From Gekko japonicus (lineage: Eukaryota), in assembly GCF_001447785.1 (NCBI RefSeq), contig NW_015172565.1:347947-411946 (forward strand): DNA of 64,000 nucleotides. The letters are read 5' to 3'. The notes under the pieces are model-generated. The model ran no database searches and had not been told where the DNA came from. It saw nothing but the letters and a program-made list of their open reading frames with translations. Every line of letters begins with the position of its first letter. Within the stretch, counting starts at the first letter, position 1. Positions 2,052 to 31,693 of this stretch are shown here, in pieces. The translations under genes and the position numbers were made by a program.

Positions 2052-4222
2052 CTATAAAACAATCAGATAAAAAATGCAAATTCATCAGAAATAAATTTGT
2101 CATAATACCCTTAGACATCTTTCCATTGTAAACACTACCTATGATTCAACTCAATGACAATAGTCTAATAAATGTTATACTCCACATACATCTTGTGATG
2201 TAGAAAAGGATCTTAAACAATTTGCAAGTATTTATTTACAATGATTAAATACAGTTATTGTATGTTATACTTCGTTAAAATAAAATAACTCCATTTTGAA
2301 AAAATATCTCTTCTGATGAGAAGCCATAAAAATAATATATTGCTTTTCCAATTTTTGGTTTTCACTAAGGAAACCCTTCTTTATCCTGTGAATTACTTTC
2401 AGCCCATCAATTAGGTTAAATGTTTGCAACATCCTACACTTGCTAATAAGTGCCTATCCTTCAGAAAAAACACAGGAGATAGAGTGACTGCGGGAGTTAT
2501 TTGTTATAAGAATAAAAGATTTCCTGACTCGCTCTGCATCCTTGTTACTGTGTCCTTGGACTCTGCATAACATCCTCTCCTCCTATGCTCTACCATGACA
2601 GTTTCACTCATCTGACCAGGGCTTTCTGCAGGTACCACCCTGCAAATGGGCAAGATCAACAACTGCCTGTATTTGTGCATTCTCTGTTGTGCCACCACCT
2701 TGTGTCTGATGAGGTCAAGAAGGCTCCCACTCTCCTGGTAAAGCAAAACTGAATTTTTCAGATGAGCATCCCTACAAAGGGAATAGGGCTATACTATAGC
2801 AGAATGTTTCAGGAAAATGTTTTAATAAAGGGAAAGGAACTATGGACTGCACTACTGTGCATAGTATATACTCTCTTTTGTTGTATCTATTTTATGTAAT
2901 TTCTGCATTGTTTAATAGATCATGTTAATATTTATGCTTTGTTTCAGATTTCTACAATTCTAATCCTATTTCATTACTTATTAGATGTAACATCCTGTTG
3001 ATGGCATTGATTTACACTGTGTAATAACTGCCTTGAATCTCAGTGAGAAAAGTGGACTATAAATAACTGATATAAATAAACGAAAAGGAATACCCTTGTC
3101 TTCTCTCACAAATGTGCTTAGGAAAATGTACGCTTAAATCTCTGTTTCCAAGCACAACGGACCTCTCCTGAGAAACATTAGTGGGCCACAACCTTTCCAA
3201 ACTCCCTGATGCTAAATATGCAAGCAAGAATGTCAAAAGCTTTGAGGAACAGTACAAGAGATTCCCTAAGTTTATGGGCATAACTCTTCATATGTCTCAA
3301 ATTAGATTTAAAGCATAGACTTCCAAGGTCCACATTCTTACAGCCTGGTTCCATGCATGTTCCCACAGAGGGAAGTTCCACTATGTTTAATGGACATATT
3401 TCAGAGTTAAAAGTGCCTAAAACTGTAGTCTTAGCCACTGTGCTAATCCAATATTCAAAAAACGTTTTGTCACTAACTTGCTTACCTGCATCTGTAATCA
3501 CTTAAGTAAATTTATTGGAACTCAAAAGTATTTTAAAACATTAAGAATTCTGTCCTTTTCTATTACAAGTGTACCAATTAAACTGAAAAATATAGCTGTA
3601 AAATATTTTGCATACTCAAAAAGTCTCTTACAATCCAATCTCAAATATATTAATCAGGAGTAAGTCAAACAGATTTAAATAAGCATTACTTCCCTTTCTA
3701 TCACTGTCTCCCAGTAGAGGGCAAAGATTTCTTCATTTTGACTGGTGTTCCTTCAATAATCCCACCTTCCTACTTTATGTTTTAATTTGATGCCTTCTGT
3801 TTCATGTTTGTATTTTTAGCTCTACTTTTATGGTATATTTTTATTAGACTGTTTTAATTATTAACTGCCTCATGCCCCAATTGCGTTGAAAGGCAGGATA
3901 AAAATGTAAATAAATAAACATTAGGTGTGTTTAGAGTCAGACCCTTAAGAAGAATATAACAAAACTCCAGTACTACTTGTAAATACAAAGTGGGAAAACA
4001 GAGAACCACAACAAGGTTATTTGAATGAAAAAGACTATGCAGAAAGAATGTGCTCACTAATGCACTGTTAAAATATTCAATTGACAAAATATGTATTTCA
4101 TTATTATAAACTAATTTCTTCACAACCCTCACTGTTAACCACACAAGACAAAACTGAGAGATTCCAACAATACCAACATGACCTCACCCCACCTCCAAAG
4201 ATAGGGAAATGTTTATTTTTAC

Positions 4223-4365
4223 CGGATTTCTGAAGAGTGATATAAAATCAGGTTTGTGTTTCTTTAAAACCTGATCAAGAAGGTGTATCGCTTCTGGCTG
4301 TCTTTTCCATATTGCATTAACCACAGTCTGCCAAAGGTCTTTGTAGGGCCCCCATAAACTAGCAA
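4223..4365 (-). CDS. NUP205: NUP205 coding exon 2
   Basis: ttcag|..ASLWGPYKDLWQTVVNAIWKRQPEAIHLLDQVLKKHKPDFISLFRNP|gtaaaa; 143 nt, frame-consistent with exons 1 and 3. Confidence 0.96.
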
Positions 4366-5321
4366 CTGAAAAAAATGCACAGAATATTTTTTTCAACTGG
4401 AGAATATGATAACAAAGTTATTTCACACTGAATGGGTTCAATACTTCAAATACAAACATGCAAGTACAATGAGGGAAGATGTCTGTATACTGATGATCAT
4501 ATACAGACTGACGATACCCTCATGACACATGTAACCTATAACCACATGCCTGTGTCCATTTGTATCATCAGCACTGATTTGAAAGGAAAGAATGATGATA
4601 AAAATGTGTTTTTGCAGAAGCAGGCAAAGAGTCCAGGTTACTTCACATTATCACACTTTTTAAAAAAAGGTAATTTTGTGCCCAGTGATAAATAGGATAA
4701 CCCCACACACAAGTATTTCAGCATAAGCTATATGAAAGTTTGTTTCCTACCTAAATACATAACATGTAGACTATGTCTCACTGCAGTTAAAAGTACAGCC
4801 TTACATCAAGAAAAGAAAGATATATGCAGCATTTAAACAGAGGTGATGACTGCTATCAGGGTAAGGACTGACAGATTAGAACAGTAAACTCTGCTTTTCT
4901 AATGATACACAGAACCCAAGAAAAGCTTCAAAGGGCTTTTAGTATAAGGCTGCATAATAAATCAGCAATAATTTCATTGACAGATGAATGATCCAAAAAT
5001 GAAAGATGGGAGACTCACATAGGATGCATGGTGTTAGTTGTGTTGAGAAAAATACAGTAAACAGAATGGATGTCATTAGATTGGGTTACACAGAGGGTGC
5101 GTAGCCCCAAAAGCAAAGTAGTTATCCTTTGACCGCACTGTTATATTCACAATTAGGATACTTAGAGAATGGAAGCAATGCAGTTTCCTTCCAGGCCTTC
5201 AGGGCATGCTTATCACCATTATCATTACCACTCTATCTATATAAAAATAAAATAAAATATAGGGCCACTGACCAAGGTGGGGGGCTCTGCAAATGCAGTG
5301 CAATTAAAGAAGCTCATCTAA

Positions 5322-6130: not shown

Positions 6131-6339
6131 GGACTCTTTTCACGTTAACGCCAAGCTCCCTAATCGGTTGCTTGGAAGCGCCTTTGACTCCTCGTGGACA
6201 TGGGAGGCTTAGGGTCGTTCGCTTTCGCAGCGCAAGGAGCGCAGAAACTGACATGGCACCGAAACCACAACACTGTAGAAAACAGACACAAACTACACTC
6301 GTTGTCGCCCGCTATAACTCCCGCACGGGTTCCTCATAC

Positions 6340-6367
6340 CTGAAATTACCGCCAACGGCGCCGCCAT
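6340..6367 (-). CDS. NUP205: Nucleoporin NUP205, coding exon 1 (MAAPLAVIS, phase-1 end)
   Basis: Minus strand reads aaaATGGCGGCGCCGTTGGCGGTAATTTCAG|gtatga inside a CpG island; resembles the vertebrate NUP205 N-terminus (MATPLAVNS) and splices in frame to exon 2. Confidence 0.93.
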
Positions 6368-6860
6368 TTTGGAAACTCTGTGCGATCCCAAAGGTCGTCT
6401 CTTCCGATAGGCCCAGAAATATAGGAAGGTGACCACAGTAATGCCGGCATTAAAAAACAATAAACAAACCGGATTTTTCTGTTACTCAACTGAGAAATGC
6501 CAGGACCAGGTCTCCCTTATTGTTTGCCATCCACATTTGCGGATAGCGCCTCAGTTAACGGAATTAGATGGACGCCAAGCGTACAGGCTCAGGTAGCCTG
6601 GCTAATCAACATTGCGGGGACCCGAAGCAATGGTCTCTGGGAACTGTAGTTCCAGTCTGCTTCACGCCGAAAAGGCGGGAAAGGTAGTGCCAAAGAACTC
6701 TTATTAAGCGACTTCTAGTTATTTGTCCAAGTAGAGAGTTAAAGGAAAAACCAGTTAGGTTTGGGACACACACAGCCGTTTTTTCTCTAGGTGGTGCCGA
6801 TGTTTTCATATTTCTTTGCATGACTCTCGCGGCCGAAATGCTTGCTGGCCCCAAAACAAT
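6368..6860 (-). promoter_or_regulatory. NUP205 CpG-island promoter with ZNF143/ACTACA motif and E2F site
   Basis: CpG-rich; tgggaactgtagt at 6638-6650 (reverse of ACTACAnnTCCCA); ggcgggaaa at 6674-6682; YY1-like aaaatggcggc at the start codon. Confidence 0.75.
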
Positions 6861-7145
6861 GTTCTTGCCTTGGGAATATTACATTGTACACAGTACAAGA
6901 AGCAAAACTAGGCCACCTGTAAATAAAGTGTTTAAACACATTTTCGGGACTCCCTAACTATGCAGAACAGTAGCCTTGTTCATAAATTACAGTGAACGCA
7001 TGTACACTTGATTGTTCTTTGTATATGTAATTCTCCCGTTACAGCCTATCCATGTACAGCTGAATGTGTGCTACAAACACCGTGTACTGGTCCCCGGTTT
7101 CGTTGGTTAAAGTGAACGCATGTTGGACCTTTCTTACAAACGCAC

Positions 7146-7298
7146 GTTGTTGTTGTTGTTGTTCAGTCGCACAGTCGAGTCCGACTCTTCGCGACCCCAT
7201 GGACCAGATCACGCCAAGCCTTCCGGTCTTCCGCCGTCCTCTGAAGTTGGCTCAATTTCATGTTCGTTGCATCTATGACACTGTCTAACCATCTCATC
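7146..7298 (-). mobile_element. BovB/RTE 3' fragment
   Basis: (CAA)n tail and ggggtcgcgaagagtcggactcgactg terminus on the minus strand; similar to copies at 9.2, 20.1 and 24.8 kb. Confidence 0.85.
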
Positions 7299-7608
7299 TG
7301 GATCCCCCTGAATTAGAGCTCATCCCCAGACTACAGAGATCCGGGGAAAGTAGATGTTTTGGAGGGTGGCCTCTGTGGCATTGTACCCTACTAAAGTCCC
7401 TGTCCTCCCCAGCCTCCCCCCCCCCCCCCCTCCCCCGGGTGTGGGGCTGGCAACAAGGCAACTATGACTTTGTGAATTAACCACAAGAGGGATCATGCTC
7501 CAGGAACAGTACAGCTGAGAGTTAGCGAACGTTAGAAAGGGAATGGGAAACCTTAGTCTGCTCTGCATCACTTCCAGAAAATGCAGACGGGGGGGGGGGG
7601 GGGGGATG

Positions 7609-7610
<2 letters not shown>

Positions 7611-7655
<45 letters not shown>
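7611..7655. repeat. (GT)n microsatellite preceded by a poly-G run
   Basis: Direct reading. Confidence 0.95.
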
Positions 7656-7657
<2 letters not shown>

Positions 7658-7799
7658 CAGGAGTCCTCCTCCTCCTCTTGCCGTGCAGTTCCTCTCGGAT
7701 TCCCAGGAAATACTCTTGACAAACAAGCTGCCCTATCTCTCGAAGAAGCCGGAAGCTCAGAGGAGCTACGCTGATGGTTTTAATTATCAGAGCCTTGCA

Positions 7800-8640
7800 G
7801 AGTACTCCTGTGCCGTGAGATCCACTCGAAATAGGCTCGCAAAATCACCGAGTTGATCTCCTGGGCGACGCAGCCCGCGCCGGGCGAAAGAGGACGGGGA
7901 GGCTTCCGCGCTAGGAAAGGGAGGGACCGGCGGCTTCCGAGCGTCCATCCGGCGGGCGCACGTGCTGTTTACTCCGCCTCCTTGTGTGGCTGTGAGCTGA
8001 GACTCAGCTTCGCCGGATTCTCGCTGGGGAGACGCTGGAGCGGCTGGATCGAGGAGGCGTCTTGTGAGGGGTCTGGTGGGTGAGTAATCGCTGCAGCAGT
8101 GACTGCTGGGGGATGAGTAAGCGCCGGCTTCGTCGGGAGCCTCCAGTCCTCGGCTCTTCCCCGTCGCCTCCTGTCTCACTCTGGTCAGGCGCTGGGAGGT
8201 TCCCTCGGAAGCGGAGCGAACCAGACCGGTTGCTCTGCCCACAGCGAGGGCTCATCAGTTCCTTCTCCCCAGGATGTGAAGGGCCTTCTTTTCGAGAGGT
8301 CTCCGCCTTTGGGGGGTCTGGTCTGGCCGAGGGAGGGAGCCCCTTGGGGATCCGCAGGCCTTGCCCCCCGTGGAGCTTCGCCTCCGGCTGGCCTGCAAAC
8401 TACGGTTCGGCATGGCTGGCCCGTTCAGTGGCCCTAGTCTGTGTGCTTCATCCTTTAGGCAGTAACGACTTTCAGGCAGTTCTTGAATTAAGGATTCAAG
8501 AGAATCTGATTCAGTGTAGTGTGCTGACCAAGGATTTTCAGGCTAAATGATTTCCCCTCCCTCTTTCTTTCTTCGTTAATCCTCGGCAGGCTTGTGGTTC
8601 TGCTTCAGGCGTGTCGATTTTGGTTTTTAGGAACTGAGTG
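7800..8640 (+). promoter_or_regulatory. POLR3H: CpG island and probable non-coding exon 1 of POLR3H (donor gtgagt at 8080; alternative gtaagc at 8117)
   Basis: High CpG/GC; donor gg|gtgagt; the ATG-bearing exon downstream is preceded by a splice acceptor (ccccctgccag at 10817), which implies an upstream exon. TSS not determinable from sequence. Confidence 0.7.
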
Positions 8641-9193
8641 GGGTATCTAAAGAGGAATGATCCTGGCTTAGAGGAGGCACATGGGGTACCTTACAGAAGC
8701 TAATGTGTAGGGGCCTGGGTTTTTTAGGGGGGAGGGATGTTCAGGCACTTGTTTGAAGGCAGGGTGGGCTGATTTCATTCATCAGGAGCAATGATTTAAA
8801 TCAAATCACACATTTAGAAGTTTGAACGTGTACTTAATGGACCTGTATGTTGCTATAACAGTTCAAGCATTCCCACTTAAACGCATACCTTATAGCTGCA
8901 AAGTTGTATATGCGTAGATAGAAAATATATATCTGATTCTCATTGGGTACATGATAATGGCCTTGGCTGTAATCATCCAAAATGTTCTAGAACAGACTTG
9001 TAATTAACATACCAAAACAGATATGGGAAATCCCCATCTTGTTTGGCTGATAATTATAAATAGTCATACTCTTAAAAATTAAATACATCATAGTGGGTAT
9101 AAAAGAATGGGGGGAAAGCCATGCATATGGGCTCTGTGCGTAGTTTTGGTGTGATGGAGAAGTGCAGCTAAATAAGTAGATGGTAAGGGTAGA

Positions 9194-9356
9194 AGACGGG
9201 GACGGCAAAGGATGAGATGGTTAGACGGTGTCATCGATGCAACGAACAGGAAATTGAGCCAACTTCAGAGGACGGCGGAAGACAGGAAGGCCTGGCGGGA
9301 TCTGGTCCATGGGGTTGCGAAGAGTCGGACTCGACTGTGCGACTGAACAACAACAA
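9194..9356 (+). mobile_element. BovB/RTE 3' fragment with TSD
   Basis: GRQRMRWLD-coding end, (CAA)n tail, aagggtaga at 9185-9193 and 9357-9365. Confidence 0.85.
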
Positions 9357-9578
9357 AAGGGTAGATGGAGAAGAGAATGTTTTCTGCTGTTGGGAAAGGG
9401 GAAAAGATTTGCTTTTGATGAAGACAAAATTGGTTTTGAATATGACAAAATAAATATACCTGTCAATAAGCATAGTTATGTTCCCCCCCCCCCAGTTGTC
9501 TGACCAATTAAAGTGATCTCTGTGGCTTCTGAGTAAAAAAAACTTCCTCAGTCTTACTTTGGAGGACAGAAAAGATCC

Positions 9579-9941
9579 CGTTATGAAAACAGAAACAATA
9601 CATTTGCTCGCGTCTGATAGTTCTTGAAAAAAGACTCAGGAATCTTGTTATGTCTTAATGTAATAAAGACATGAGTGAGCTTATGCACAGTCTATATTAA
9701 AAGAGCATTGCAAGGATTGACCTAATGGGCCAATCAGAGAAGCCTTTGCCTTCGGCGGGAACCACTCTCATTGGTTCCAAGCTCCATATTCCTATTGGTT
9801 GTTATCTGTTTGTTGGGTGTGGTTTTGCCCGTTCAAATCATATATAAGCCAGCCTTGTTCTATGAAGTTTGTCTTTGTGTTATGAGCTGAATAAAATGAA
9901 ATCACTTGTTCAAGAAGCTGCCTCGATCTCAGTTCATAATA
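9579..9941 (+). mobile_element. Probable solo LTR in POLR3H intron 1
   Basis: Ends (c)gttatgaa...ttcataat(a) are inverted and resemble mutated TG...CA; internal CCAAT boxes, tatataag, then aataaa in U3-R order. Confidence 0.5.
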
Positions 9942-10165
9942 AATCTTAAATAATGTAGTGAGATGCGGTTTTCATTCCTCAAAGTCCTTGTGGATATCCT
10001 ATCATCTGAGCCTAGGAGGGACCATTCTTTGTATGGACACAACTTTTTAGATTCAGGTAGCAGAATATTCTTGTTTGGCTTCAGCAGTAATGCTACATCT
10101 GCTGTGGCAATTTCTGAAAGAGGATTTTCTCTTTGGAGAAAATTGCTAGGTTCTATGTCCTATGC

Positions 10166-10449
10166 GGTTCAAGACCCGGGTGCCGCAAGACAGGGTGAGC
10201 TCCTGTCTCTAGTTCCAGCTCCTGCCAACCTAGCAGTTCGAAAGCAAGAAATTGCAAGTAGATTAATAGGTACCACTTCGGTGGGAAGGTAACAGCGTTC
10301 CGTGCGCCTTGGCGTTTAGTCACGCCGGCCACATGACCACGGAAACGTCTTCGGACAGCGCTGGCTCTTCGGCTTTGAAACGGAGATGAGCACCGCAACC
10401 CTAGAGTCGGATTCGACTGGCTTTCGAGCAAGGGAACCTTTACCTTTAC
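10166..10449 (+). mobile_element. Sauria SINE, 5'-truncated
   Basis: (ACCTTT)n tail; 13-bp TSD ctatgtcctatgc at 10153-10165 and 10450-10462. Confidence 0.9.
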
Positions 10450-10841
10450 CTATGTCCTATGCTAATGAACGAATGTCTATATCACAACTAAAACTGACAC
10501 GGTATAAAGTATATGATCTGCACATTGTGGAAGGTGAGAATAAAGCATTTGCCCTTTTGGTCCTGGCCCATGTAACTTGTTAAGCTTATCAATGCCTTCT
10601 CATTTTTAGAAAAGATTTTCTTATATAAAACATCTTCAAACTTCATATATGCTTCAGCTATGATTTTTCTGGATAACATAGCTCGGTATTTCATACTGTC
10701 CAAGTAGTAGGCATTTAGTGGTTAAACAAAATAGAAAGTTGACCAATGAAAGATTTCTGACAACTATAATTGCAGAAAAGAATGTTCTCTCTCACTCTGC
10801 ATTTTCCCCCCTGCCAGGAACATTGCTTTTGCTTTGCCAAT

Positions 10842-10952
10842 ATGTTTGTGCTAGTGGAAATGACAGATACTGTGCGAATACCTCCATGGCAATTTGAAAG
10901 GAAGCTTAATGATGCAATCACAGAAGAATTAAACAAGAAGCTAGCAAATAAG
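10842..10952 (+). CDS. POLR3H: RNA polymerase III subunit RPC8, coding exon 1 (exon starts at 10818 with 24 nt of 5'UTR)
   Basis: [37 protein letters not shown]|gtaaag; recognisable RPC8/RPC25 N-terminus. Confidence 0.96.
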
Positions 10953-11455
10953 GTAAAGTTTAGAGTGCTGTAGGCCAGTGCTTGATTAACATATATATAT
11001 ATAGGGCAAACCATGGTTGCCATCATCACAACAAAAAAGCTGACCTCTAGCCTTAATTCAGTCCCTCTCCAATTTCTCATAATTTCATTATTGCTTTAAG
11101 AAGCTTGATTTAATTCACCTACCACTACTGAATGGTTTTCACATATAAACAAGGAATGTCAAAACCTGCATGCACATGCTTTTAATGTCATACAACAAAG
11201 CATATTGATGTGAAATGATAAAAAGAGCTTCTACTGAGAATCAGTGTGAGGCACTACAATAAAAGCATTGCTGAAAATACGACGCCATAATGAAGTTTCT
11301 AAGTGCCATGGCAACCTGGAACCTGGGAATTTTTGAGCCCTGTTAGAGGGCTGTAATGGGAATATATTCCAAAGTCAGAAGCCTTGATATTTAGCTACAT
11401 ATTCAAAAGTGTTAAAGAACACTGTTAAAGAACAGTGTGGTTCTTTACTATGACC

Positions 11456-11660
11456 ATATGAAGCTGCCTTGTACTGAATCAGACTGTTAGAATATCTATC
11501 TTGGATTGGCTAGTCTGACTAGTCTGACAACAGTTCTCCAGGCAAAGAGACGTCTTTTCCAACCTATCACCTGAGATCCTTTAACTAGAGAGGTCAGAGA
11601 TTGAACCTGGTAGCTTCAGCATGCAAAACGTTATCACTGAACCTTAGTCTCTCCCCATAA
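11456..11660 (-). mobile_element. Degenerate tRNA-derived SINE (Squam2-like)
   Basis: Similar to 31478-31693 (atgaagctgcctt...gattgaacctgg). Confidence 0.6.
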
Positions 11661-12042
11661 TACTAGTCATGGTGCAAATTGATACTTTTAATAAGTGTAA
11701 TGTGCAAACAGCTGTCCCCAGTCATTGCCAATTTTAACAGACTGGATAGAATTGGGAGCAAATTAAGTTCTGTATCTCTCCATTGCTAACACTTGTTGTC
11801 TAGGTGTACTGTAATAAAATGCAGGAGAGCAGAAAAATAAAGAGTCAAAATCAACTTTTTTGGTTGCTCTGGGATACATATGGCAGTATCCCTTTGGAAA
11901 TCTATTTTTGCCAAGGTTTCTGTATGAACCACTTCTATCCATTCAGTTATTATGCTTCAGTTCACCAGGCTGGTTTATTTGTATGGCCTTTCTTGTGCAT
12001 AAATTCTGATATGCTATTTAAGGAAGGTTTAACATATTTTCT

Positions 12043-12178
12043 TGTTCCAATGTATCTGAAATAGTGTGCCTTGCACATGAAAGCTCATACCTTGATTAAA
12101 CCTTTGTTGGTTTTAAAAGTGTCACTGGACTCTAAATTTGTTCTACTGCTTCAGACCAACATGGCTGACCATCTGGAT
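12043..12178 (+). mobile_element. Penelope-like element terminal fragment
   Basis: tctgaa..gtgtgc..gcacatgaaagctcatacc..ctttgttgg..gtcactggactc; repeated at 24.2, 27.5, 52.2 and 54.6 kb. Confidence 0.65.
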
Positions 12179-12233
12179 ATATTTTCTCATTGTTACTGGG
12201 ACCTATTGCTATGTAAGCTCTTTCCCCAAACAG

Positions 12234-12330
12234 GTTGTATATAACGTTGGCCTCTGTATTTGTCTGTATGATATCACAAAGCTGGAAGATTCCTATATAT
12301 TTCCAGGAGATGGTGCGTCACACACAAAAG
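12234..12330 (+). CDS. POLR3H: POLR3H coding exon 2
   Basis: aacag|[32 protein letters not shown]|gtttgt; 97 nt. Confidence 0.96.
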
Positions 12331-13613
12331 GTTTGTCAAATGTTTATCTTAATCTAGTCTCTTTGTGAAATTAAAACTATAAGAAACCTGAGGGAGATTT
12401 GCAATTGCTGACAATTGCAGGTCTTTAACAGTTCTTTTTTTAGAGGGATCTTAAGAAATGCTGACAACATCACAGCAGCATAAATACTCCTTTACTCCTT
12501 AATCTACATAATGACTGCAGTCCAGGAGAAAGTGCCAAGTACATCTGGGAAGACACTGTTTCATAAAGCCAAAATAGTTTGAGGAATGAAGATTCCGTTT
12601 AATCCTTAGTACCATCTTCCCTTGAGACAGAGTTATGGTGACTATTCTGATATGCGACAACATTTCCTTTTCAATATGTTTTTGTATAAATGATTGTCAT
12701 CTTTTTCCTGGACTGTTTGGCTATTTTTCATCCACTGCTTAAAGAAAATGAAAACTACTGGCAGGAGGCTTATCCCATTCTGTATTTGATTTGCTCATGC
12801 CCATATTTCCTGGTGACCTCACTTTCATGTATCTTGCAGACGGAATCTTAAGAAGATAAATTCCATCTCTTTGGGTGGAAAGAGGGCAGTCCTATCTACA
12901 TTTCCCTTACTGCTGCACTTCATCCAGCTGCTGTCTTATTTGATCGAGTTTGAGCTCAAAACCAGTTATTTTTCAATCTTTTAGACTTGCAGAAATTGGA
13001 TTCTTGTGCTCTGTATGTTATTAGTACCATATGAGCCAGAAGCCTAAAGGAAAGGCTTTAGGATTGGGAAGGGCAAAATCAGTGCTGTGTGTGAACTGTG
13101 TGAACATGACAGGTGAAAGATATCAGAGGGTTGTTGATGACCTTGTTGAGGGAAAGTGTGACTATTAATCAGTAGTATAAATACCAAAATGTCTCTTACA
13201 GGTACCGTGGGTCTGGTTTTGTTGCTCTGCTTTGCATTTACCTACATGCATCAAGCACTACTCTTCCCATCTATTTGCCCCTTCTTAAGGAAACATGAAG
13301 TTTTTGAGCAAGTACAATTTATACAGAGTCTTTCCATTGCTCATGCAATCTCTTAATACTTTCTGGAGACACCTTTCCATGCAGACCTGAGTGTGGACCC
13401 CTCTTCTTTTAAAAAATTGTCTGCTAAAAACAGTCCCCAAATGTAGTGGAACTTTACATAAATGAGTAGAGAATACTACCATAATGCTGATGCCTGATTG
13501 TGTCAAGTTGTGTTTATTGAAAATACAGATTTCTAGAGAATGCAAGTACAGGATAACTGTGCTTTAATGTACTTAAGGACGTCACATTAATTTATTATCC
13601 TTGCTGTTTTCAG

Positions 13614-13700
13614 TGCATTTTCGGTATGTTGTATTTCACCCTTTTCTGGATGAAATTCTGGTTGGAGAGATAAAAGGCTGCAGTCTGGAAGGAGTCCGTG
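13614..13700 (+). CDS. POLR3H: POLR3H coding exon 3
   Basis: ttcag|[29 protein letters not shown]|gtaagt; 87 nt. Confidence 0.95.
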
Positions 13701-14030: not shown

Positions 14031-14798
14031 TAAATTATTGGTATACTTGTTGAGTTGCCTGTCTGGAGGGTGTTCCGCCCACTTAGTAATGTCTAAAACT
14101 TGTTTTGAGCTGCCAGTTAACATCACTAGATTGCAGAACTTAACCACTTGAAGTGTGGGAATTATGTTTCTCCCCCCAGGGAACTGAGGACAAAGGACCC
14201 TAAATGTGCAACTAATTCCCAACTGCTTTGAACCCAAGACAGTGTGCTGCTATCATACTGATATTGAGGCCTCTTTTGGTCCTGAATGCAGTGTATCTTA
14301 AATTTGTAAGCCACTTGGATTGTCCAGTTCTCTGTGTTGCCTGGCCTGTGAGAAAGACATTTATTGGGATAGGATGTTAACATGGAATATCAGTTCAAAG
14401 GAAGCTACTGTTCCTTTTGTGTTTGCTTTTAACTTGATTGTAGTTGCCTGTAGTAACTGGAATCTCTCCTTTGTAGCCGTATGACATTGCCAAAAAGCCT
14501 GTGCACACCAAGGAGTGGTAGGCTTTATTTTTTTCAAAAGCAAATAACACATACATAGCGGGAGAAGAAGAGAAGAATATCACTTGTGGTTTAAAGTATT
14601 ATAGTGCCAATAACAGATTTGTTTGGATGTTCAGATATATTAAAGGCAGCTTTAATACTGTGCTATAGCAGGGAGAATGCTGAGTCTGTGTTCAAAATCT
14701 TATTCTGGAGTGTCACTGGGTAACCTAGGAAAGCCTTTAAAATGTGGTGTCACATTTTGCCTGAATAATCTCTATATTAATTTGAATTCTTCCTGCAG

Positions 14799-14862
14799 TT
14801 TCTCTTGGGTTTTTTGATGACATCATCATTCCTCCAGAATCTCTACAGCAACCTGCCAAGTT
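14799..14862 (+). CDS. POLR3H: POLR3H coding exon 4
   Basis: tgcag|[22 protein letters not shown]|gtatcttt; 64 nt; followed by a U12-type donor. Confidence 0.95.
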
Positions 14863-16377: not shown

Positions 16378-16585
16378 TGATGAAGCTGAGCAGGTGTGGG
16401 TCTGGGAATATGAGACTGAAGAAGGAGCCCATGATCTGTATATGGATACAGGGGAGGAGATCCGTTTCCGTGTGGTGGATGAGACCTTCATTGATACATC
16501 CCCAACAGGCCCAAGCTCTGCACAGCCTTCTACCTCTGGTGCTGCAGATGAGGCCCAGAAGAAGGAGGCTCCCTATACTCTTGTG
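16378..16585 (+). CDS. POLR3H: POLR3H coding exon 5
   Basis: gccag|[47 protein letters not shown]...KKEAPYTLV|gtaaat; 208 nt. Confidence 0.96.
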
Positions 16586-17047: not shown

Positions 17048-17101
17048 GGATCAATCAGTGAACCTGGCCTAGGCCTCCTATCCTGGTGGACAAACAGTTA
17101 A
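17048..17101 (+). CDS. POLR3H: POLR3H last coding exon
   Basis: gacag|GSISEPGLGLLSWWTNS*; the six exons total 621 nt = 206 aa plus stop, no disruptions. Confidence 0.95.
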   Translation, partial: GSISEPGLGLLSWWTNS

Positions 17102-18174
17102 CCAGTGGGAGAGACTATTCTGAACCATGGAACTTTGCAAACTGGAAAAGCCTACTTTATCTTCTATGGACAATGGCAGTGAAAAGGCAACTTTGTTTTC
17201 TCACTTCTGCTTTGCATCAGGTCCACATCAATCTGAGTGGGAGCATCTAGTGTGATATCTGCACAGAAGAACAATCTATGAAGCTCTGACAGTGTACACT
17301 CAGAAGGTTCTGATCCCTCTAATAAGTGGGATTGTGTAAAAGTTCTTATGAATTCAGCCTGGAAAAACATTTAAAGCAGATAAATGAAATCATCCTCAAT
17401 GAGAGTTCTTGGAGGAGCGAAGTATTTCATACTGCTGCTTTTCATTTCATGATGTGATGGAAATGGGGAGGATGTTGTGAAAGCTAGCCCTTGCTTTGAC
17501 TGCTTTTGTTCCATTTCCCCCATTAGAATGGAGATTCTTCCATTAGCCAAGAGTGTCTGGGAAAGCAATGAGCTGGCCCTTCACAATTAACAAACCTTGG
17601 TGAGGAAGCCTCAGGCAGGAATCTGGCCCACAAGTGGGCTGAAATGTTGCCAAAAGGACCCTAAGCAAGTGCCCTTCCTAATCCTACTGTTTTCTGGGAA
17701 AACACACACCTGCCATCGTGTTTAGCTGTGATATTGCATGGATTTGGGTGGGTAATATTGTTTTCTGTAAACAAGACCTGAAAGCAACTAGAAGACTGAT
17801 CACTCATCTAAATGGATCTTTCATGCTATTGCATGACTGATGAAAAAATTCAGTTATCTGCTGCTAGTTTTCAATATTAGGAGGCAGATGTTTCTGCCTT
17901 ATGGCTGAGAGCTTTTCAGCCATTGAATGTGCGTGCAGAAGTTGACAGCGGGTGCTGAAACTCTTGTCTTCTGAACAGAAAATAATCACTTCCAATTGGA
18001 GAAGCAGTGGTGTAGGAATGAAGCCTGTAAGAGATTGGGCACCTGGCAAAGGGTGACAACTGTAATATATAACAAATTTCTGTATCTTATGTGGTGTTAC
18101 TGAATTAGTTTCTGGAGGATTATCCCTGTGAGGATTCCTCTAAAGCACCTTAGATGCTATTTAGCTGAAATTGT

Positions 18175-18180
18175 AATAAA
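18175..18180 (+). terminator. Probable POLR3H polyadenylation signal
   Basis: First AATAAA noticed after the stop codon (about 1.07 kb 3'UTR), followed by T-rich sequence. Confidence 0.55.
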
Positions 18181-19089
18181 ACTTGATAATGGATTTTCCT
18201 TTCATATTTATACTGTGTAGCAATGGCTAGAGGATTTTTGAAATAGTTCTGTAGACATCACTTCAAAAACTTTGAAACACAAACTGGAGAGTCTTGATTA
18301 CTGGACCTGGAGGGCAATTGGATAAGATGCATATACCATATTTACTGAAAAGACAACCCTGAATGGAAGACACCCCCATATTATACACCCCAAAAGGTTA
18401 TTATAGGATATAGCTATAATTTGTATGTAAGATGACCTCCCCCATCCCCATTTTAATGGCATATTAACACACACACCCCAATGTTGCATTTGACTAATAC
18501 CGTAATGTATGGCTTATTGCAGTTCCTGTTGGTGGTATTTTCTTTTCAGGGGGCAGAGCCTTTTTTGTAACGTATGTACGAATGTGGACCACTACTGGTG
18601 AAATTCATAAACATTTAACTGCTTTTATTTAGACTGTAGTCCTAAAGATTGATCTGGAAACAAAGTACTAACTATAGCCAAATTTTAATGAGCTTCAAAC
18701 AAGGCCTCCACTGGTCTTTTTAGGGCTTTGTCAATCTGTACAACATTAGTTGGATTCAGCAGTTCACTAGCAGAAGGCCCTAATGGTCATTGGATCTTTC
18801 TTGTTTACCATCCCCTCTGATAGCCTGCTGACAGAAAAAGAGAGGGTGACTTTGCTCCCTTCCACTCCTCACTGCAGCCCACTGACCTAGGTGGCTGTTA
18901 CTCCCTATGTTAACTTTGTTGAGGTAAGAAGGGATTTGTTGGGAGAGGGGAAAGTGCAGAAAATCTGTGATCCTTACATTAAGTAGATTGCTGGATCAAA
19001 CCCATTATGTTGCTCTTTTATCCACTGATCCATAGTTCTTGCTTTTTGTGCTACTTGTTGCTGGAACAGGTCCAGAGAAACAGATACAC

Positions 19090-19404
19090 CAGGCATGTCC
19101 AAGTTCGAACAGGTAGTGATCTGTTTTTTTCCAGCCAAAAGTGCCGGTGATCTACCACCATATAAATAAAGTTTCAAATTAGTTTCAAATTAGATTTTAA
19201 CCCACTAAAGTTGGGTTCCTCCGCCGCCCCACCATTTATAATGCACCTTCTGTCAGAAAGAACTGCGAACATTTTTTACCACCAATCATAAAAAAACCCC
19301 AAACACCTGCCCAGCAAACCAGGAGACCAAGTAAGGCTGGTGATCTACCTCTGACCTCTCCGCGATCTACTGGTAGATTGCGATCTACCTGTTGGACATA
19401 CCTG
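19090..19404. mobile_element. hAT-type MITE
   Basis: TIRs caggcatgtccaa / ttggacatacctg; 8-bp TSD agatacac / gcatacac; internal gatctac repeats. Confidence 0.75.
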
Positions 19405-20097
19405 GCATACACTATTAAAATAAATTTTAGATACACATGGAATTTGGTAGTGCCATGCCTCTTTGAAGTTGCCTTTAACAGCAAAATGTATTTGTTGGAG
19501 ATCACATGGATCCTGTCTTGTGCTTTGTGTAGCCATATAACCCAGAATATTTAATCACAGGTGTAGAATATAACCCCGGAAGTGTCAAGCTTTGTCATTT
19601 GTCCTTAATGGCTTCAAAAAGTGCACCTTATGTAGAAGAGGAAAAAAATCTTGTTTGTATGGCTTAGTCTCACAGCTAGTTACTCCATTAAGCTAAAGCA
19701 AAGGGCAAATCTGCTAGAACACAAGGTGGCTAAAGTTCACAGGTAAGCTGCTCTGCTAGTGCTGGACCTCAGCAGTTGCATTGTTCGGAGTTAGAGGTGA
19801 CTTTCCTACTAATTTATCCTGTCCTTCCCTATTCCATGATAATGACTCACAGGTTCCCAACCTTATTGTTAGAAAAGATATACATATTGTATGTTTTGAT
19901 ATGCTAATTTAAGTTGTATAAATTGGAGGCTATGATGAATCATCTAAAAAACTTTAACTGGGTGACAGCAGTAGCAAAAAAAAATACATAGAATGTTTAT
20001 TTAAAGCAAAAAAAAAAATCCCTATGAAATTAACACCCATACTTGAAGAATTATAACTCAAAACTTTCTTCCAGAATTTATACTTCAGTTAGTTTAA

Positions 20098-20750
20098 TGT
20101 TGTTGTTGTTCAGTCGCACAGTTGAGTCTGACTCTTCGCAACCCCATGGACCACATCACGCCAGGCCCTTCTGTCTTCCGTCATCCTCTGGAGTTTGCTT
20201 AATTTCATGTTCATTGCATCGATAACACTGTCTAACCATCTCATCCTTTGCCATCCCCTTCTTTGACCATCAATCTTTCCCAGCATCAGGGTCTTCTCCA
20301 GTGAGTGCTCCCTTCTCATTTGGCGGCCAAAGTATTTGAGGTTCAGCTTCAGTATCTGGCCTTCCAGGGAACAGTCAGGGCCACTAGTTCACGGATTCCC
20401 AAGATGTCAATGTTCAGTCTTGTCATCTCATTTTTGACCATATCCAACTTACCTTAATAAATCTTACATTCCAGGTTCCTTTGCAGTATTGTTCTTTGCA
20501 GCATCGGACTTTCCTTTCACCATCAGACACATCCAAAGCTGAGTGTCCTTAATGGCTTTGGCCCAGCCGCTTCACTCTTTCTGGGGCTACTTGTACTTGC
20601 CCTCTGCTCTTCCCCAGTAACATATTGGACACCTTCCGACCTAAGGGGCTCATCTTCTGGCGTCCTATCTTTTAGCTTTTTGTTACTGTCCATGGGGTTT
20701 TCTTGGAGTGGGTTGCCATTTCCTTCTCCAGTGGATCACGTTTTGTCTGA
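20098..20750 (-). mobile_element. BovB/RTE LINE 3' fragment with internal deletions
   Basis: Minus-strand ORF MRREHSLEKTLMLGKIDGQRRGWQRMRWLD typical of the BovB RT C-terminus; (CAA)n tail. Confidence 0.88.
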
Positions 20751-20949
20751 TGTTTTCTCTAGACTAATACCTTAGATTGCATCTTTGTAAATTTTGAACA
20801 ATACATTTGGGAGAATAGTAACATTTGCATGAATATAGTGCTGTTCTAATAAGATGGCTGTTCTAAGATAAAACTTACTACCATTTGTAGTATAAAACCT
20901 TGGAAATACATTTGCTGGCTAGAAAAAATTGTTAAAACAATCAGCTTGA

Positions 20950-21126
20950 TGTTTCCCTTCTCTGTGTAGAGTACTGTCAAGTTGCAGCCAACTTAGGGTG
21001 ACCCCATAGGGTTTTCAAGGCAAGAGCCGCTCAAGGCTTTCTTGGTGCTTTCCCATCCAAATACTGACCAGGGCCAACCCTGCTTAGCTTCTGCGATTGG
21101 GCTAGTCTGGGCCACCCAGTTCAGGG
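20950..21126 (-). mobile_element. 5S rRNA-derived SINE, degenerate
   Basis: Minus strand gaagctaagcagggttggccctggtcagtatttggatggga matches the 5S internal promoter region; RTE-like tail. Confidence 0.7.
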
Positions 21127-21897
21127 TATGTTTCCTTTACTTTTAATTAAACTGGAGCAATTCCTAAATTTGGCACAGCTGTCATCCTTCCTCCTTTTCA
21201 TTTTGATATAGATGGCTATTATGCTGGTGTCCCTGCTCCAATGTTTTGCCCTGAAGAAAGGAGGGGGAGCCCAGAACAGCCTCTCATATTTTTTAAATAG
21301 AAGGCCAAGAGCAGGAGAGTTAGCATTAAAGGGGCTGAACTACATGCAGGAAATCCAAAATGTATTTGTCCTTTCCCCCCCTTTTCTTAGCAAACTACAG
21401 CGGGGGGGGGGGGGGTTAACCATTTTCCTAGTGTGATCTTCAGCCAGATGAAAAATATAATTTTGTTTAGGAAACAAAAAACCCACAACCCACTCTGTCC
21501 TTGGGCTTTGATGCTCATACAGAGACGTTTTAGTTGTTGTTGTTGTTTTGGGGGGGGGAGAAAAAACAGCAGATCTGGTCCCAGGTCTTGCACATAAGGG
21601 TGGCTTCAGCCTAAAGCATCGCCAGCTTTGGAAGGAAGCTACTGCCAACAAGCTTTTTGCGCACCGATGGATTCGTGGTGGTTTCCCTGTACATCGCCTT
21701 AGCCCTAAGCGGCCAGGCGTCTCGTACATATAGATGTTATTTCACAGGTGAAGCCTCTGACAGTATACCCACCTTGTCTACTCTGACCCTATACTTAAGT
21801 TAGCGTGCTGTTGGAGAAGGGGAAGACGCTAATCAGCCTTGCCAACATGAAGGCTGCTGGACGAAGGAAGGGTCCATGGCGGAGCGGCTCTTCATAC

Positions 21898-21924
21898 GGA
21901 AATTACCCTCAGCCGCGCGGCTTT
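21898..21924 (-). pseudogene. Decayed duplicate of NUP205 exon 1 (ATG changed to AAA, 1-nt deletion before a retained GTATGA donor)
   Basis: ccaagaaagccgcgcggctgagggtaatt vs ccaaaatggcggcgccgttggcggtaatt, 21/29 ungapped; reads KAARLRVIS vs MAAPLAVIS; flanks colinear with the NUP205 promoter. Confidence 0.8.
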
Positions 21925-22330
21925 CTTGGAAAACTCGTTCAGTGGTCGTCGCTCGACCTAAAGCGCCGCCGTTGACGAGAGGCCCGCAAAGTGCCAGAGA
22001 CGACAAAGCTAGTGCCGGTGTAGAAACTCCACTTTCCCCACACGCCGCTACCTGCTGGCGCAGTTTCTCGAAATACTCTTTTAAGACCCTGGGCCACTGT
22101 TGCTTTATAAACCTCAGGGTCTTCCAGGTTGAGAATCCGAACCTTAGGAGTACTGGCGAGGTGGTTTTTACTAACCCCGAAAGTGAGGACCTGACAGCAA
22201 TGGAAATTGGGAGCTGTAGTTCCTGGACCCTCTCGGCGGGAAAGGAGATTGAAGAGTTTTTAGACGACTTCGTTGTCTGCGACGGCGTCAAATATAATTT
22301 TGTCTGAGAAAGAGGTTCAATTAAACTGCT
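21925..22330 (-). promoter_or_regulatory. Duplicate of the NUP205 promoter (orphan CpG island)
   Basis: tgggagctgtagt at 22208-22220 and ggcgggaaa at 22235-22243 in the same order and similar spacing as at 6638-6682; several additional colinear blocks. Confidence 0.75.
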
Positions 22331-22622
22331 AATTTCAGGCGAGGGGGCTACAATCACAGGGTTACATGACAGAACAGGTCCACAATTATAATGATCTTGA
22401 GGAATTCTTAAAAGACATGCCAAGAACACTTTTAATCTCCACTGGGGGGACGGACTCTGTTATTGCCATATGTAAAACAGAAGGGAGCGACTTCTAAATT
22501 AACCTTCTCATCAGTTTGTTAAATTTGATTTGCAAGTTATGCTAATTTGCTAATATTTTTTTACTCCTCCCTCCACACACTGGTGAGGGGATGTGATCTT
22601 CTGCACATCACTGGATGTGGTT

Positions 22623-22974
22623 AAAGGTAAAGGTAAAAGTTCCCTTGCTCGAAAGCCAGTCGAATCCGACTCTAGGGTAGCGGTGCTCATCTCCGTTTCA
22701 AAGCTGAAGAGCCAGCGCTGTCCGAAGACGTTTCCGTGGTCACGTGGCCGGCATGACTAAACGCCAAGGCGCACGGAACGCTGTTACCTTCCCACCGAAG
22801 TGGTACCTATTTATCTACTTGCAATTTCTTGCTTTCAAACTGCTAGGTTGGCAGGAGCTGGAACTAGAGATGGGAGCTCACTCCATCATGCGGCACCCGG
22901 GTCTCGAACTGCTGAACTACTGACCTTCCACAGCCTGCAGTTCAGCGTCTTAACCACTTGAGCCACCGCAGCTC
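22623..22974 (-). mobile_element. Sauria SINE, full length
   Basis: tRNA-like head gagctgcggtggctcaagtggttaag, body near-identical to 10166-10449, (ACCTTT)n tail. Confidence 0.9.
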
Positions 22975-23042
22975 AATTACACCACAGCAATTCTTTGCAG
23001 CTGGCCACACTGGAAAATAGCGGCTGAAACGCCCTGTCTGAA

Positions 23043-23125
23043 CGCACCCTTAATGTGAAATAGCCAACACCATGTGGATGCAGCGCACCCTTAATGTGAA
23101 ATAGCCAACACTATGTGGATGCAGC
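23043..23125. repeat. 41-bp tandem duplication
   Basis: cgcacccttaatgtgaaatagccaacac(c/t)atgtggatgcag occurs twice. Confidence 0.9.
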
Positions 23126-23818
23126 CTTCCGTGGATGTAGATTTAATTGATTTCAGTTGACAATCACTGCATTTACAATAATAATAATAATAATGCTTTC
23201 GATTTATTAATCGCTTTCCCCACAAGTGGGCTCAAAGTGATTTACAGTTACTCTTTAGACAGGGGACTAACAATGTTTTTCATAGGGGATAGGGAAGACA
23301 ACATATAATTCATTTAAGTTGCACACGCCGTACTGTCCGATGGAAAAGCCTGTGGCTTTTATATAGAGGAGACAAAGTACTATCATTATATTCTTATTTA
23401 AGGAAGCCCTTATGGCTGGTTAGGAATATGATAGGGCTTAGCTTCTAATGCCACCAGCAGCTGGAAGGTGAGGCTCAGAGTGGAGGACTAACATCTGGGA
23501 TGCTTCCCCCCACCATCATGTCAGCAAAGAACCCCAGCTTTTTGCATTCAACTATTTTGTGAAGCATCTTTTATTGTAAAACACCAAAACTGGACCTACA
23601 TCTTCAAAGACAGAGTTACTGAACATCATTCTCTATGAGAAGCATATCCTGAGAAGGCAAGTTTTGCTCCAGGCATTTCCATTCATACCCACTCATCTAC
23701 TAAGCTGATTAACTGAAACTGAGCACTGATTACACAGCATTTGCTTAATGTATTTCATTAAGCCTCCAAAAACAAACAAAACTATTCCCTTAACTCATTT
23801 ATCTATCAATAGATAGTA

Positions 23819-24046
23819 AAAAGGTAAAGGTTCCCTTGCTCGAAAGCCAGTCGAGTCCGACTCTAGGGTTGCGGGGCTCATCTCCGTTTCAAAGCCGAAG
23901 AGCCAGCGCTGTCTGAAGACGTTTCCGTGGCCATGTGGCCGGCATGACTAAACACCAAGGCGCACGGAACGCTGTTACCTTCCCACTGAAGTGGTCCCTA
24001 TTTATCTACTTGCAATTTCTTGCTTTCGAACTGTTCGGTTGGCGGG
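23819..24046 (-). mobile_element. Sauria SINE, 5'-truncated
   Basis: 14-bp TSD atcaatagatagta at 23805-23818 and 24047-24060. Confidence 0.9.
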
Positions 24047-24842
24047 ATCAATAGATAGTACATGACTTTTGAACTACTTCCCTCTCTATTGGTGACATCT
24101 ATAAAACAAAATTGACATCAGCTATATATATCTCATTCCTCCCCCCACTATTGCTGACTGTATAAAATTATCAAATTAGACTAAAACTTGATCAAAACCC
24201 ACCCTTTGTTGGTCTTAAAGGTGCCACTGAACTCAAACTTTGTTCTGTTGCTTCAGACCAACACGGCTACCCATACTGAATCTGGCATTATCTTAGTTAA
24301 CATTAATATCCATATGATCCTGTGTACAATTCTTCTATAGTATTAGAATTCCTCTATATACTTCCCTACATATTGAATAAACTCAGACAAGAAGCCGTTT
24401 TGCTAAGTAAGTAAAATGAGTTATTCTTGCTTGTGAACAAGAAGAGAGAAATCTGAGGGCGAAGAGCTGTTTTTTCTCTGCCAGCAACCCTGCCACTGTG
24501 ATACTGCTGCTACTGACTGAGTGGTGTTTTCACTGTGCATTTATTTGCCTATCCATCTGCTAGGAATGTTGTCCGTCTACCAACATTGTTATGGATGCAG
24601 AACTGTGTATTTGAGAATGGACACTGCTGTTGATATATTTATTCTTATGACTTGCTAATTGTTTTTGAGTTGCTGCTGTGCATAGGATTTCTAGCTTTCA
24701 TCAGTGCAAGCAGCAGCACCGTGATGTCGGAATGACCATCCAATGTATTTTTCCAGCTTCCTCGTTTAGAACAGAAAACTAGTTAGGGGGATGTTATTGA
24801 AGTATCAAATTATGGCTGAACTAGAAAAGTGAACAAGGATAA

Positions 24843-25138
24843 GTGGTTTGCCCTTTCGAGTTCCCTGGAAGGCCAGATACTGAAGCTGAACCTCAAATAC
24901 TTTGGCCACCAAATGAGAAGGGAGCACTCACTGGAGAAGACCCTGATGCTGGAAAGACTAAAGGTAAAAGAAGAAGAAGGGGACGGCAAAGGATGAGATG
25001 GTTAGACAGTGTTATCGAGGCAACGGACATGAAATTAAGCAAACCCCGGAGCACAACGGAAGACAGGAGGGCCTCCTGTGATGTGGTCCATGGGGTCAAG
25101 AAGAGTCAGACTCGACTGTGCGACTGAACAACAACAAA
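24843..25138 (+). mobile_element. BovB/RTE 3' fragment
   Basis: RRRRGRQRMRWLD-coding end and (CAA)n tail. Confidence 0.85.
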
Positions 25139-25539
25139 ATAAAGAGTCAGTGTGGTATAGCAGTTAGACCAAGATCTGGGAGATCCAGGTTTGAATCCCA
25201 GCCACTCACATATTCTCAGCCTAACCTGCCTTACAGGGTTGTTGTGAGGAAACATGAAGACGAAGCAATGTGGTAAAGCCACTTTCGGTCCCCATTGGGG
25301 AGAAAAATGGGATACAAATGAAGTGAATAAATAACTACATAAATCCAAAAGGCAACTAAACGCACAAGCATTAAGTTTAAAAGTGATTAAATAAATAAAT
25401 AAAACCGGACCTCTAAACAATAACAAACACCGAGAAGAAAAATTACTGCCAAGTGGTATCACTACAAATACAGCCAGTCTTTTCCTTAAAAAACCGAAAT
25501 ATTTCAATATTACACTGAATATAATTTTGGGTTTCAAAG

Positions 25540-26100
25540 CGGGGACTCGCGGAAGGGTACTGAGGACCAGCGTTATCTTACAGGCTCCAGAATGTAGAAC
25601 GAGCCAAAGCTCCTGAAGCGGTATCGCATTCTGCCCATTCGATTTCTCACGCCCCTCTTCCCTTGCAGTCCTTGACTCCAGCGGAATTTATTGCATCCAT
25701 TCGATAAGGAAGAAATACTCCAGGAATACGCCACAGAATGTGGCTTCGGGATAGTCCAACCTAAAGAGGCGACCGGGAAGTCTTGAAGGCTCCATCGAGC
25801 TAGGTCAGCCCTTTAGTTCCTTTGGAGTACACGAGAACAAGCGCATACCCTACTTCCGCAGCTTGTGAATCGTAGCGTGAAGAAGCTGCTGAGCCTGTTG
25901 AACCTCTGAATTGACAAGCATGCTCACCGGCTAGCCACTCCGCCGCCGGTAAACCACGGTCCTTCCCACCCCAAGACTACAATTCCCATCATGCTCTCCC
26001 CACTGTCGCGTCCGACCTTTTCTTTCCGCCCACCCGCCTGCCCATCCGTCGGCTCGTGCGCATGCGCGTTGGAAGCAGCGTCCGGGGCAGGCAGGCAGTC
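25540..26100 (+). promoter_or_regulatory. CNOT4 CpG-island promoter
   Basis: Canonical ZNF143 composite motif actacaattcccatcatgc at 25976-25994; NRF1 palindrome tgcgcatgcgc at 26057-26067; GC boxes. Confidence 0.8.
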
Positions 26101-26316
26101 TCTCCCTAATGTAAGATGGTGGCCGGTCTGGCAGCGGAGCGCGCAGAGCCTGAAGATTACCCGTCTCTCACATAAAGGTCGTCGGTGGAGCTCCCCCCAG
26201 TCCCTTTCCCGCTGCCACGGAAGAGAGAGAGGGCGAGAAGAAGAGCGAGCCCTAGAGAGCCCCGCCGCCCCCGCCGCCAGACAGCCGGTCGCCGTGGAGC
26301 AGAGACGACGAGGCGG
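26090..26316 (+). other. CNOT4: CNOT4 non-coding exon 1 (5' boundary approximate)
   Basis: Within the CpG island; strong donor gcgg|gtgagt at 26317; the next recognisable exon on this strand is the CNOT4 ATG exon. Confidence 0.75.
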
Positions 26317-27530
26317 GTGAGTGAGAAGCAGCAGCCATCGCAGGGGCTGGGGGAGCCGGGTCTGCCTGGTTACGAGAGAGCGGAGGCCTCGTGGGGAGCC
26401 TGCAGGCCTCGGGCCCCCCTTCCTCCGCCGGCTGCTTCAGCCCTTCAGTGGGCACTGGGGCTCCCTTTGCCTGGAGGAGCGGAAGGAAGGAAGGGAATCG
26501 GGCGAGCCCAGGGCGGCTCCTCTGCCCGCAGTCAGGGCCCACCAGCCCTTCCGAAGGGGCTTCCTGCACTCGGTGGTCTGGGTCGGGGGACTGGTGTGGG
26601 GACGGAGTCTGCGTGGGATCCCGAGGCTATGCTGAGATTTCTCAGGATGGGGGGCCTGGCAGTAAACAGGAGCGGAGGGCTCTGGTCCAGGAGCTTCGCA
26701 TCCCCCTCGCGAGTGGCGTGTGTGTCTGTGGAGTAGGTGAGAGGCAGCCGAAGCTGTTGCTGGAGGCTACGCGTCTTTCGTGGATTTTTCGTAAGGGTTG
26801 GCTGGAAATGTTTCTCTTTTTCCCTCCGCACGCTGAAGCAGGCGGAAAAAAACCCCAGGCTTGTTAAGATCAGCACGTGTATTGGTGGGTGGCGATTAAC
26901 TGTATGAGTGTTTCCTTTGCAGTTATTCTTGGTAGGCCCTTTGACTTTTCCTGGGATTCTTTCACTTCATGTATGCTTTCCTGCCTTTAAAATAGATATC
27001 TTTGTTTTTTGGAATGCAGGGGTTCAGCTACAGAATTTTGCTCCTATTGAATGTCATCAGTTCTTTCCCTTTTAACATGCAAATACAATTGCTCGTACTG
27101 TCCACCTTTTTTGTTTTAAGGGTTTTATGGTTTTCTTAGCATATCTATTTATAATGATACAGGTTTTTCAGGAGAGAGAGTAATTCCAGGGAAGGATACA
27201 TCCTGTGTCTGATGTAAGCTAGAAAAATACTGAAGCTAGTAAGTGGTGCCTGAAAGCTATCTTGTATGTGCTTGGTATACTGACTCTATGCCTCTTACTG
27301 CTGAGCATGGAATTCAGCTCTGTTGAAATCTTGATCACTCCAAAATGTTACTTGTGTCCTCAGATTATATGGACTTTAGTAGGAATGGTCATATGCTTGT
27401 TGTAGTTGTGCTTCTGTATTTACTTTAACAAAAATCAGTTGATTTTAACTGAATTCTTGGTACCCTCATTAACATTACCTTGGTTATAGATATAATGAAA
27501 GCAAATTGGAATACTGAAATTATATTTTAA

Positions 27531-31477: not shown

Positions 31478-31693
31478 ACACATGAACACATGGAGCTGCC
31501 TTATACTGAATCAGACCCTTGATCCATCAAGGTCAATATTGTCTACTCAGATGGGCAGTGGCTCTCTGGGGTCTCAGGCTGAGGTCTTTCACATCACCTC
31601 CTACCCAATCCTTTCAACTGGAGATGCCAGGAATTGAACCTGGGACCTTCTGCATGCCAAGCAGATGCTCTGCCACTGAGCCACAGCCCCTCC
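31478..31693 (-). mobile_element. tRNA-derived SINE (Squam2-like)
   Basis: Head ggaggggctgtggctcagtgg...ccaggttcaattcc with A/B boxes. Confidence 0.75.

Follow-up and report, generated by a model that had tools for sequence, protein, structure and literature searches.

In the 64-kb window of Gekko japonicus DNA analysed here, the window being the whole stretch examined, from a reptile-like genome, POLR3H, the gene of an essential RNA polymerase III subunit, is located between NUP205 and CNOT4, and its transcripts carry a non-coding first exon followed by an intron whose beginning is paralogous to the start of CNOT4 intron 1. We consider it probable that an old rearrangement at the DNA level put POLR3H into a duplicated NUP205/CNOT4 promoter block, the spare CNOT4-side half of which was reused by the gene. 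Of this account, the paralogy of the blocks, the arrangement of the genes and the splice joint have been demonstrated.

NUP205 is encoded on the minus strand and extends leftwards from exon 1, the coding part of which (6340-6375) has its ATG; in Pfam, the Nup192 profile is matched at consecutive positions by three more exons, at 4187-4417, 1863-2051 and 489-680. POLR3H, on the plus strand, is intact and comprises six coding exons, which were searched against Pfam one by one and not as a joined protein. The gene was identified by SHS2_Rpb7-N in exon 2 (10818-10952, with the ATG at 10842) and exon 3 (12234-12329), followed by RNA_pol_Rbc25 in exon 6 (16379-16585), and a comparison of exon 6 with protein representatives gave 88-90% identity to bird RPC8, the matching clusters carrying bird and mammal RPC8 names. 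The ends of exons 4 (13613-13696) and 5 (14798-14860) are approximate, and the last coding exon together with the 3' UTR occupies 17048-18180, with the stop codon at 17099-17101 and an AATAAA at 18175. The ATG exon of CNOT4, also on the plus strand, lies at 53162-53335 and encodes a NOT4-type RING (zf-RING_4 in Pfam, E=1.7e-20). It is found ~27 kb past a CpG island at 25541-26940, in which a consensus donor, GTGAGT, is present at 26317. We infer that the non-coding exon 1 of CNOT4 is located at 26100-26316 on the plus strand, since the other CpG-rich stretches there are mostly on or beside transposon ORFs.

The possibility that POLR3H is a retrogene was ruled out by its six intron-separated coding exons and by the exon 2-3 joint in RNA-seq reads, and any move of the gene would therefore have been DNA-based and not a retroposition. 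No ACO2 remnants were seen 3' of POLR3H when the open segments of 17100-21900 were inspected by eye on both strands, only TE-derived ORFs being present.

RNA-seq data of the same species, consisting of three raw-read runs and one contig set, were compared with the region 7670-12339. The joint between 8079 and 10818, which had been predicted from the sequence alone, was seen with GT..AG ends in six reads from two runs, namely five reads with five different starts in X22 and one in X23; the exon 2-3 joint (10952 to 12234), used as a control, was covered by 12 reads, 11 of them in X22 and one in X23. In X22, reads covered 7826-8137 and exon 2, and the depth was zero in 10478-10789, directly upstream of exon 2, which is therefore not a first exon. 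As had been noted earlier, this ATG exon starts at a splice acceptor and has no CpG island of its own (observed/expected CpG 0.13, with none nearby). The joint thus indicates that POLR3H transcription starts in CpG island A (7661-8320; GC 0.61, observed/expected CpG 0.81) and that the coding exons are joined to a non-coding exon 1A on the plus strand (7850-8079), defined by RNA-seq depth and by the joint, with an exact 3' end and an approximate 5' end, as reads begin within the 7826-7981 bin. The intron between them (8080-10817) contains SINE copies at 9182-9358 and 10164-10451. The six joint reads, obtained at low coverage, give no sign that POLR3H transcripts start elsewhere: no other joint into 10818 was found at the reporting threshold, below which rarer alternative first exons could fall at this coverage, and none from the alternative donor at 8116 was reported at a threshold of at least three reads. 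Two longer bird RPC8 'isoforms' (P0155 and P0005) were considered as evidence for exon 1 and rejected, their extra length consisting of retained introns and including no upstream exon. Long poly-C, poly-G and (GT)n runs occupy 7400-7660, between a SINE and the promoter and just upstream of island A.

The sequence-only reading had taken the POLR3H island for a copy of the CNOT4 island on the basis of a series of short colinear matches, and all the strings that it quoted were found at or near the positions assigned to them. Smith-Waterman alignment of 7670-8640 with 25500-27000 gave a score of 66.7 over 8036-8364 versus 26295-26632, where 217 of 283 aligned bases are identical and 20 gaps account for 101 columns. 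This corresponds to a colinear stretch of 270-330 bp with ~77% identity, counted from 8095 and 26354 or from 8036 and 26295. Dinucleotide shuffles scored 17.7 +/- 2.7 (maximum 29.9), and the reverse-complement, reverse and complement controls scored 18-21. When 162 tiles were taken from both strands of the entire window, the CNOT4 island was the sole outlier, the runner-up scoring 20.8, and nhmmer detected the pair with E=7.6e-8, followed by a next match with E=8.6. The signal is confined to 8095-8364 versus 26354-26632, both on the plus strand, which scored 64.0 against 14.1 +/- 2.7 in shuffles that keep local composition, none of 300 equalling it. The extension back to 8036, comprising the exon end and donor (8036-8094), is not above chance when taken alone (34 of 300 shuffles equal it), and neither are the matches upstream, in the promoter and exon body (7661-8035; 124 of 300), or downstream (8365-8660; 29 of 300). 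The significant part is wholly intronic, lying just 3' of both splice donors, and its right copy is the start of CNOT4 intron 1. Hence only a portion of the proposed series stands: the central matches reflect homology but the outer ones (for example 7675/25655, 7708/25712 and 8588/26857) are indistinguishable from chance, and alignment of the two islands establishes a shared intron start but not a shared exon, promoter or downstream region. The block begins 15 bp past the POLR3H donor at 8079 and 37 bp past the donor of the CNOT4 island and, as both shortly precede the paralogous stretch, the two donors appear to be positional counterparts.

Within this intron block, the best-conserved piece (8233-8244 and 26520-26531) looks acceptor-like in each copy, a pyrimidine tract being followed by CAG, and might represent a bound element or belong to an alternative exon of the 5' UTR. 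No known RNA accounts for the conserved block, since an Rfam search of the whole window returned only a tRNA match (RF00005, 66.8 bits) on the minus strand at 31619-31690, inside CNOT4 intron 1, which could be either a gene or the head of a SINE.

The large nhmmer bias term for the intron block, and the G-rich composition of both stretches just downstream of a CpG-island start, are what would be expected if the two blocks were dispersed repeat copies, or if their similarity were an artefact of composition in G-rich CpG-island shores, and no locus duplication had taken place. We regard this explanation as extremely improbable. A dispersed repeat or SINE was rejected because exactly one partner, on the same strand, was found for the block in the 64-kb window; controls that keep composition, whether reversed or locally shuffled, reached 14-21 as compared with 64-67; other CpG-rich stretches of the window show no match; and a second block of different composition, described below, is colinear with the first. 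Plain self-BLAST of the 64 kb at E of at most 1e-3 returned TE pairs only and missed both duplicated blocks, the detection of which needs gapped local alignment or nhmmer.

Upstream of the intron block no resemblance above chance was detected between the two first exons. Exon 1A contains no ATG, in agreement with the earlier remark that the CNOT4 uORFs are not evident in it, and the CNOT4 island has three (at 26062, 26109 and 26116), including that of a 19-codon uORF. Two ETS cores and an E-box are recognized in island A, and ZNF143, NRF1, YY1 and Sp1 motifs in the CNOT4 island. These differing motifs, and the failure of promoter and exon body to align with CNOT4, would suit a history in which POLR3H brought along a promoter and first exon of its own and acquired the CNOT4-like proximal intron later, by gene conversion or by chance. 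Such a history is nonetheless very unlikely: gene conversion requires pre-existing homology, the similarity begins 15 bp past the donor so that a breakpoint would be needed exactly there, chance is excluded by the alignment, tile and nhmmer controls, and the duplicated NUP205 block on the other side would be left unexplained. The proposal that POLR3H is a regulatory chimera with a CNOT4-derived first exon is therefore upheld as regards the spliced non-coding exon and the CNOT4-like start of the intron that follows, but the promoter and exon body carry no detectable similarity to CNOT4. They probably descend from those of CNOT4, having diverged past alignment or been remodelled, a descent deduced from their position and from the second, flanking NUP205 block because their own similarity is undetectable.

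This second block was found when 21400-22500 was compared with all tiles of the window. The only outlier was the alignment of 6328-6725 with 21886-22279, with a score of 34.4 as compared with at most 20.6 for the others, and the pair was also detected by nhmmer (E=3.7e-11). The left copy is the real exon 1 and promoter of NUP205. The right copy is a ghost in which the ATG is lost and the observed/expected CpG is ~1.1. In both block pairs order and orientation are identical, as in two colinear copies each of which has kept a different side, and there are therefore two copies of a segment that begins with NUP205 exon 1 and extends as far as the first part of CNOT4 intron 1, one at 6328-8364 and the other at 21886-26632, which enclose POLR3H. 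Decay appears to have been reciprocal, to judge from the sequence: only the left copy has retained the NUP205 ATG, and it is the right copy that is followed by the CNOT4 coding exons. The simplest reading would be a single duplicated NUP205/CNOT4 segment that has left a head-to-head block on both sides of POLR3H. The divergence of the blocks is high (K2P 0.28 and 0.42), which points to an old event, provided that the blocks were not reset by gene conversion, and the SINE and TE insertions are later than the duplication since their positions and orientations differ between the copies. Within the ghost exon 1 region (21800-22100) the same CpG ratio of ~1.1 is observed, and a ZNF143-type motif is found at 22209; this suggests that the ghost NUP205 copy may still be unmethylated and perhaps forms a promoter-like element active upstream of CNOT4.

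According to the origin that we favour, an intron-containing POLR3H, made up of the ATG exon and five later coding exons, would have been placed inside the duplicated NUP205/CNOT4 head-to-head block. The left copy of the block would have kept a working NUP205 exon 1, its CNOT4-side half becoming the promoter region and non-coding first exon of POLR3H, and the right copy would have kept the CNOT4 side and a NUP205 side without an ATG. Transcription of POLR3H would thereby proceed from island A, with exon 1A ending at a donor that occupies the place of the one in CNOT4 exon 1, intron 1 opening with 270-300 bp in which the start of CNOT4 intron 1 is still recognizable, and exon 1A being spliced to the ATG exon 2.7 kb downstream. 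This layout would go back to one duplication, at the junction of which POLR3H came to lie. Somewhat doubtfully, the whole might even be ascribed to one replication-type rearrangement, in which a template switch copied the POLR3H ATG exon and five coding exons into the junction of a tandem duplication of the ~2 kb NUP205/CNOT4 block, moving the gene and giving it a spare promoter in one step; the 270 bp intron start would then have remained alignable, and the promoters not, as a functional promoter-proximal element or via gene conversion.

In mammals, POLR3H is located between ACO2 and CSDC2, at 22q13.2 in human and alike in cattle, and human CNOT4 and NUP205 are both in 7q33 (PMC12580483, PMC12789686, PMC4433680). 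On this published mammalian gene order, POLR3H would be the incomer at NUP205/CNOT4; the order fits such a role, mammals not being an outgroup test for the gecko lineage. As a tandem duplication is symmetric, the polarity might also be the reverse, with the NUP205-POLR3H adjacency ancestral and CNOT4 having moved in with a copy of the block. This is highly improbable in view of the common 7q33 location of human CNOT4 and NUP205 and of the place of POLR3H between ACO2 and CSDC2 in human and cattle. Moreover, duplication of NUP205 and CNOT4 as a pair would account for the position of the ghost NUP205 exon next to CNOT4.

The identical strand and order of the two copies would also permit exon 1A to have arisen by duplication as an alternative first exon of CNOT4 and to be spliced, even now, to the ATG exon of that gene at ~53150 as well, so that POLR3H would be nested in this long intron and make use of the same exon 1A. 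A common function could in that case be the reason why donor and proximal intron have stayed CNOT4-like. We hold this to be unlikely. The use of exon 1A by POLR3H is shown directly by the joint reads, and a shared exon would supplement the capture of a CNOT4-side promoter region by POLR3H but not replace it.

A gene that is moved without its promoter normally dies. The survival of an essential, broadly expressed gene after such a move is rarely visible, and at POLR3H both flanks are still readable, so that duplication of a promoter, reciprocal decay and capture of the spare CNOT4-side half are exemplified by one compact natural locus. Of particular interest is that both halves of the duplicated two-sided promoter are legible and that the spare half is reused. 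The intron start is a candidate regulatory element because its similarity has outlasted that of the promoter. For annotation, 8079 should be taken as the end of a non-coding exon 1 of POLR3H, and only where reads support it should the CNOT4-like island at ~8 kb be named a CNOT4 first exon.

No description of POLR3H beside NUP205/CNOT4 was found in the literature. As a relocated gene that uses a borrowed promoter region, POLR3H would be a clear case and not an unprecedented one, as capture of promoters and 5' exons by DNA duplication is already known. The closest described case is that of the LRRC37 family, to which segmental duplication in primates supplied promoters from BPTF and DND1 (PMC3371713). 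As is proposed for gecko POLR3H, a foreign promoter region and 5' end were gained there through DNA duplication of the corresponding part of a gene unrelated to the recipient. However, whereas LRRC37 forms an expanding family, the recipient in the gecko is an essential housekeeping gene, apparently relocated. The gecko event also dates back much further (K2P ~0.3-0.4), and what was donated is one side of a duplicated head-to-head block, the opposite side having undergone reciprocal decay. Retrocopies are likewise known to gain promoters and 5' untranslated exons (PMC4772013), and the retrogene that replaced SYCP1 in amphioxus uses the bidirectional promoter of a neighbour (PMC5803294). These cases share with POLR3H the expression of a moved, promoterless coding sequence via a nearby CpG-island or bidirectional promoter with new non-coding 5' exons, but POLR3H has introns and the promoter that it uses is a duplicate and not the working copy of a neighbour. 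Gene relocation through duplication followed by loss of the parent copy has been described for DPY19L2 (PMC1475853). There too a functional gene arose at a new locus via DNA duplication, but DPY19L2 is not described as using a captured promoter. A general model for the fate of duplicated regulatory modules is duplication-degeneration-complementation, to which the present locus conforms in that the copies of the two-sided promoter block keep one side each, NUP205 on the left and CNOT4 on the right. It departs from the model in that the spare CNOT4-side half is not just lost and would drive a third, unrelated gene, POLR3H.

Apart from the duplicated blocks, the window contains two SINE families, one with copies at 7151-7298, 9182-9358, 20079-20372 and 24860-25159, and another at 10164-10451, 22625-22912 and 23820-24047, the copies of which are 93-95% identical, indicating that this second family is young. 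The SINE tails are presumably of the BovB-derived type familiar from squamates. Intron coverage is swamped by both families, on which RNA-seq reads from their copies at other genomic sites pile up to depths in the hundreds to thousands. CNOT4 intron 1 also contains a 732-aa, reverse-transcriptase-like ORF of LINE type on the minus strand (34907-37105); TE-like ORFs were found at 37394-38472 and 41096-41749. A CpG-rich, low-complexity stretch in the same intron (38601-39400; GC 0.60, observed/expected 0.83) has open frames on both strands and may represent the 5' region of a TE or else an internal promoter that is not annotated. In CNOT4 intron 2, retroelement-looking ORFs of 699, 197 and 209 aa are present on the plus strand at 57303-60676, with a CpG-rich stretch at 57761-59480.
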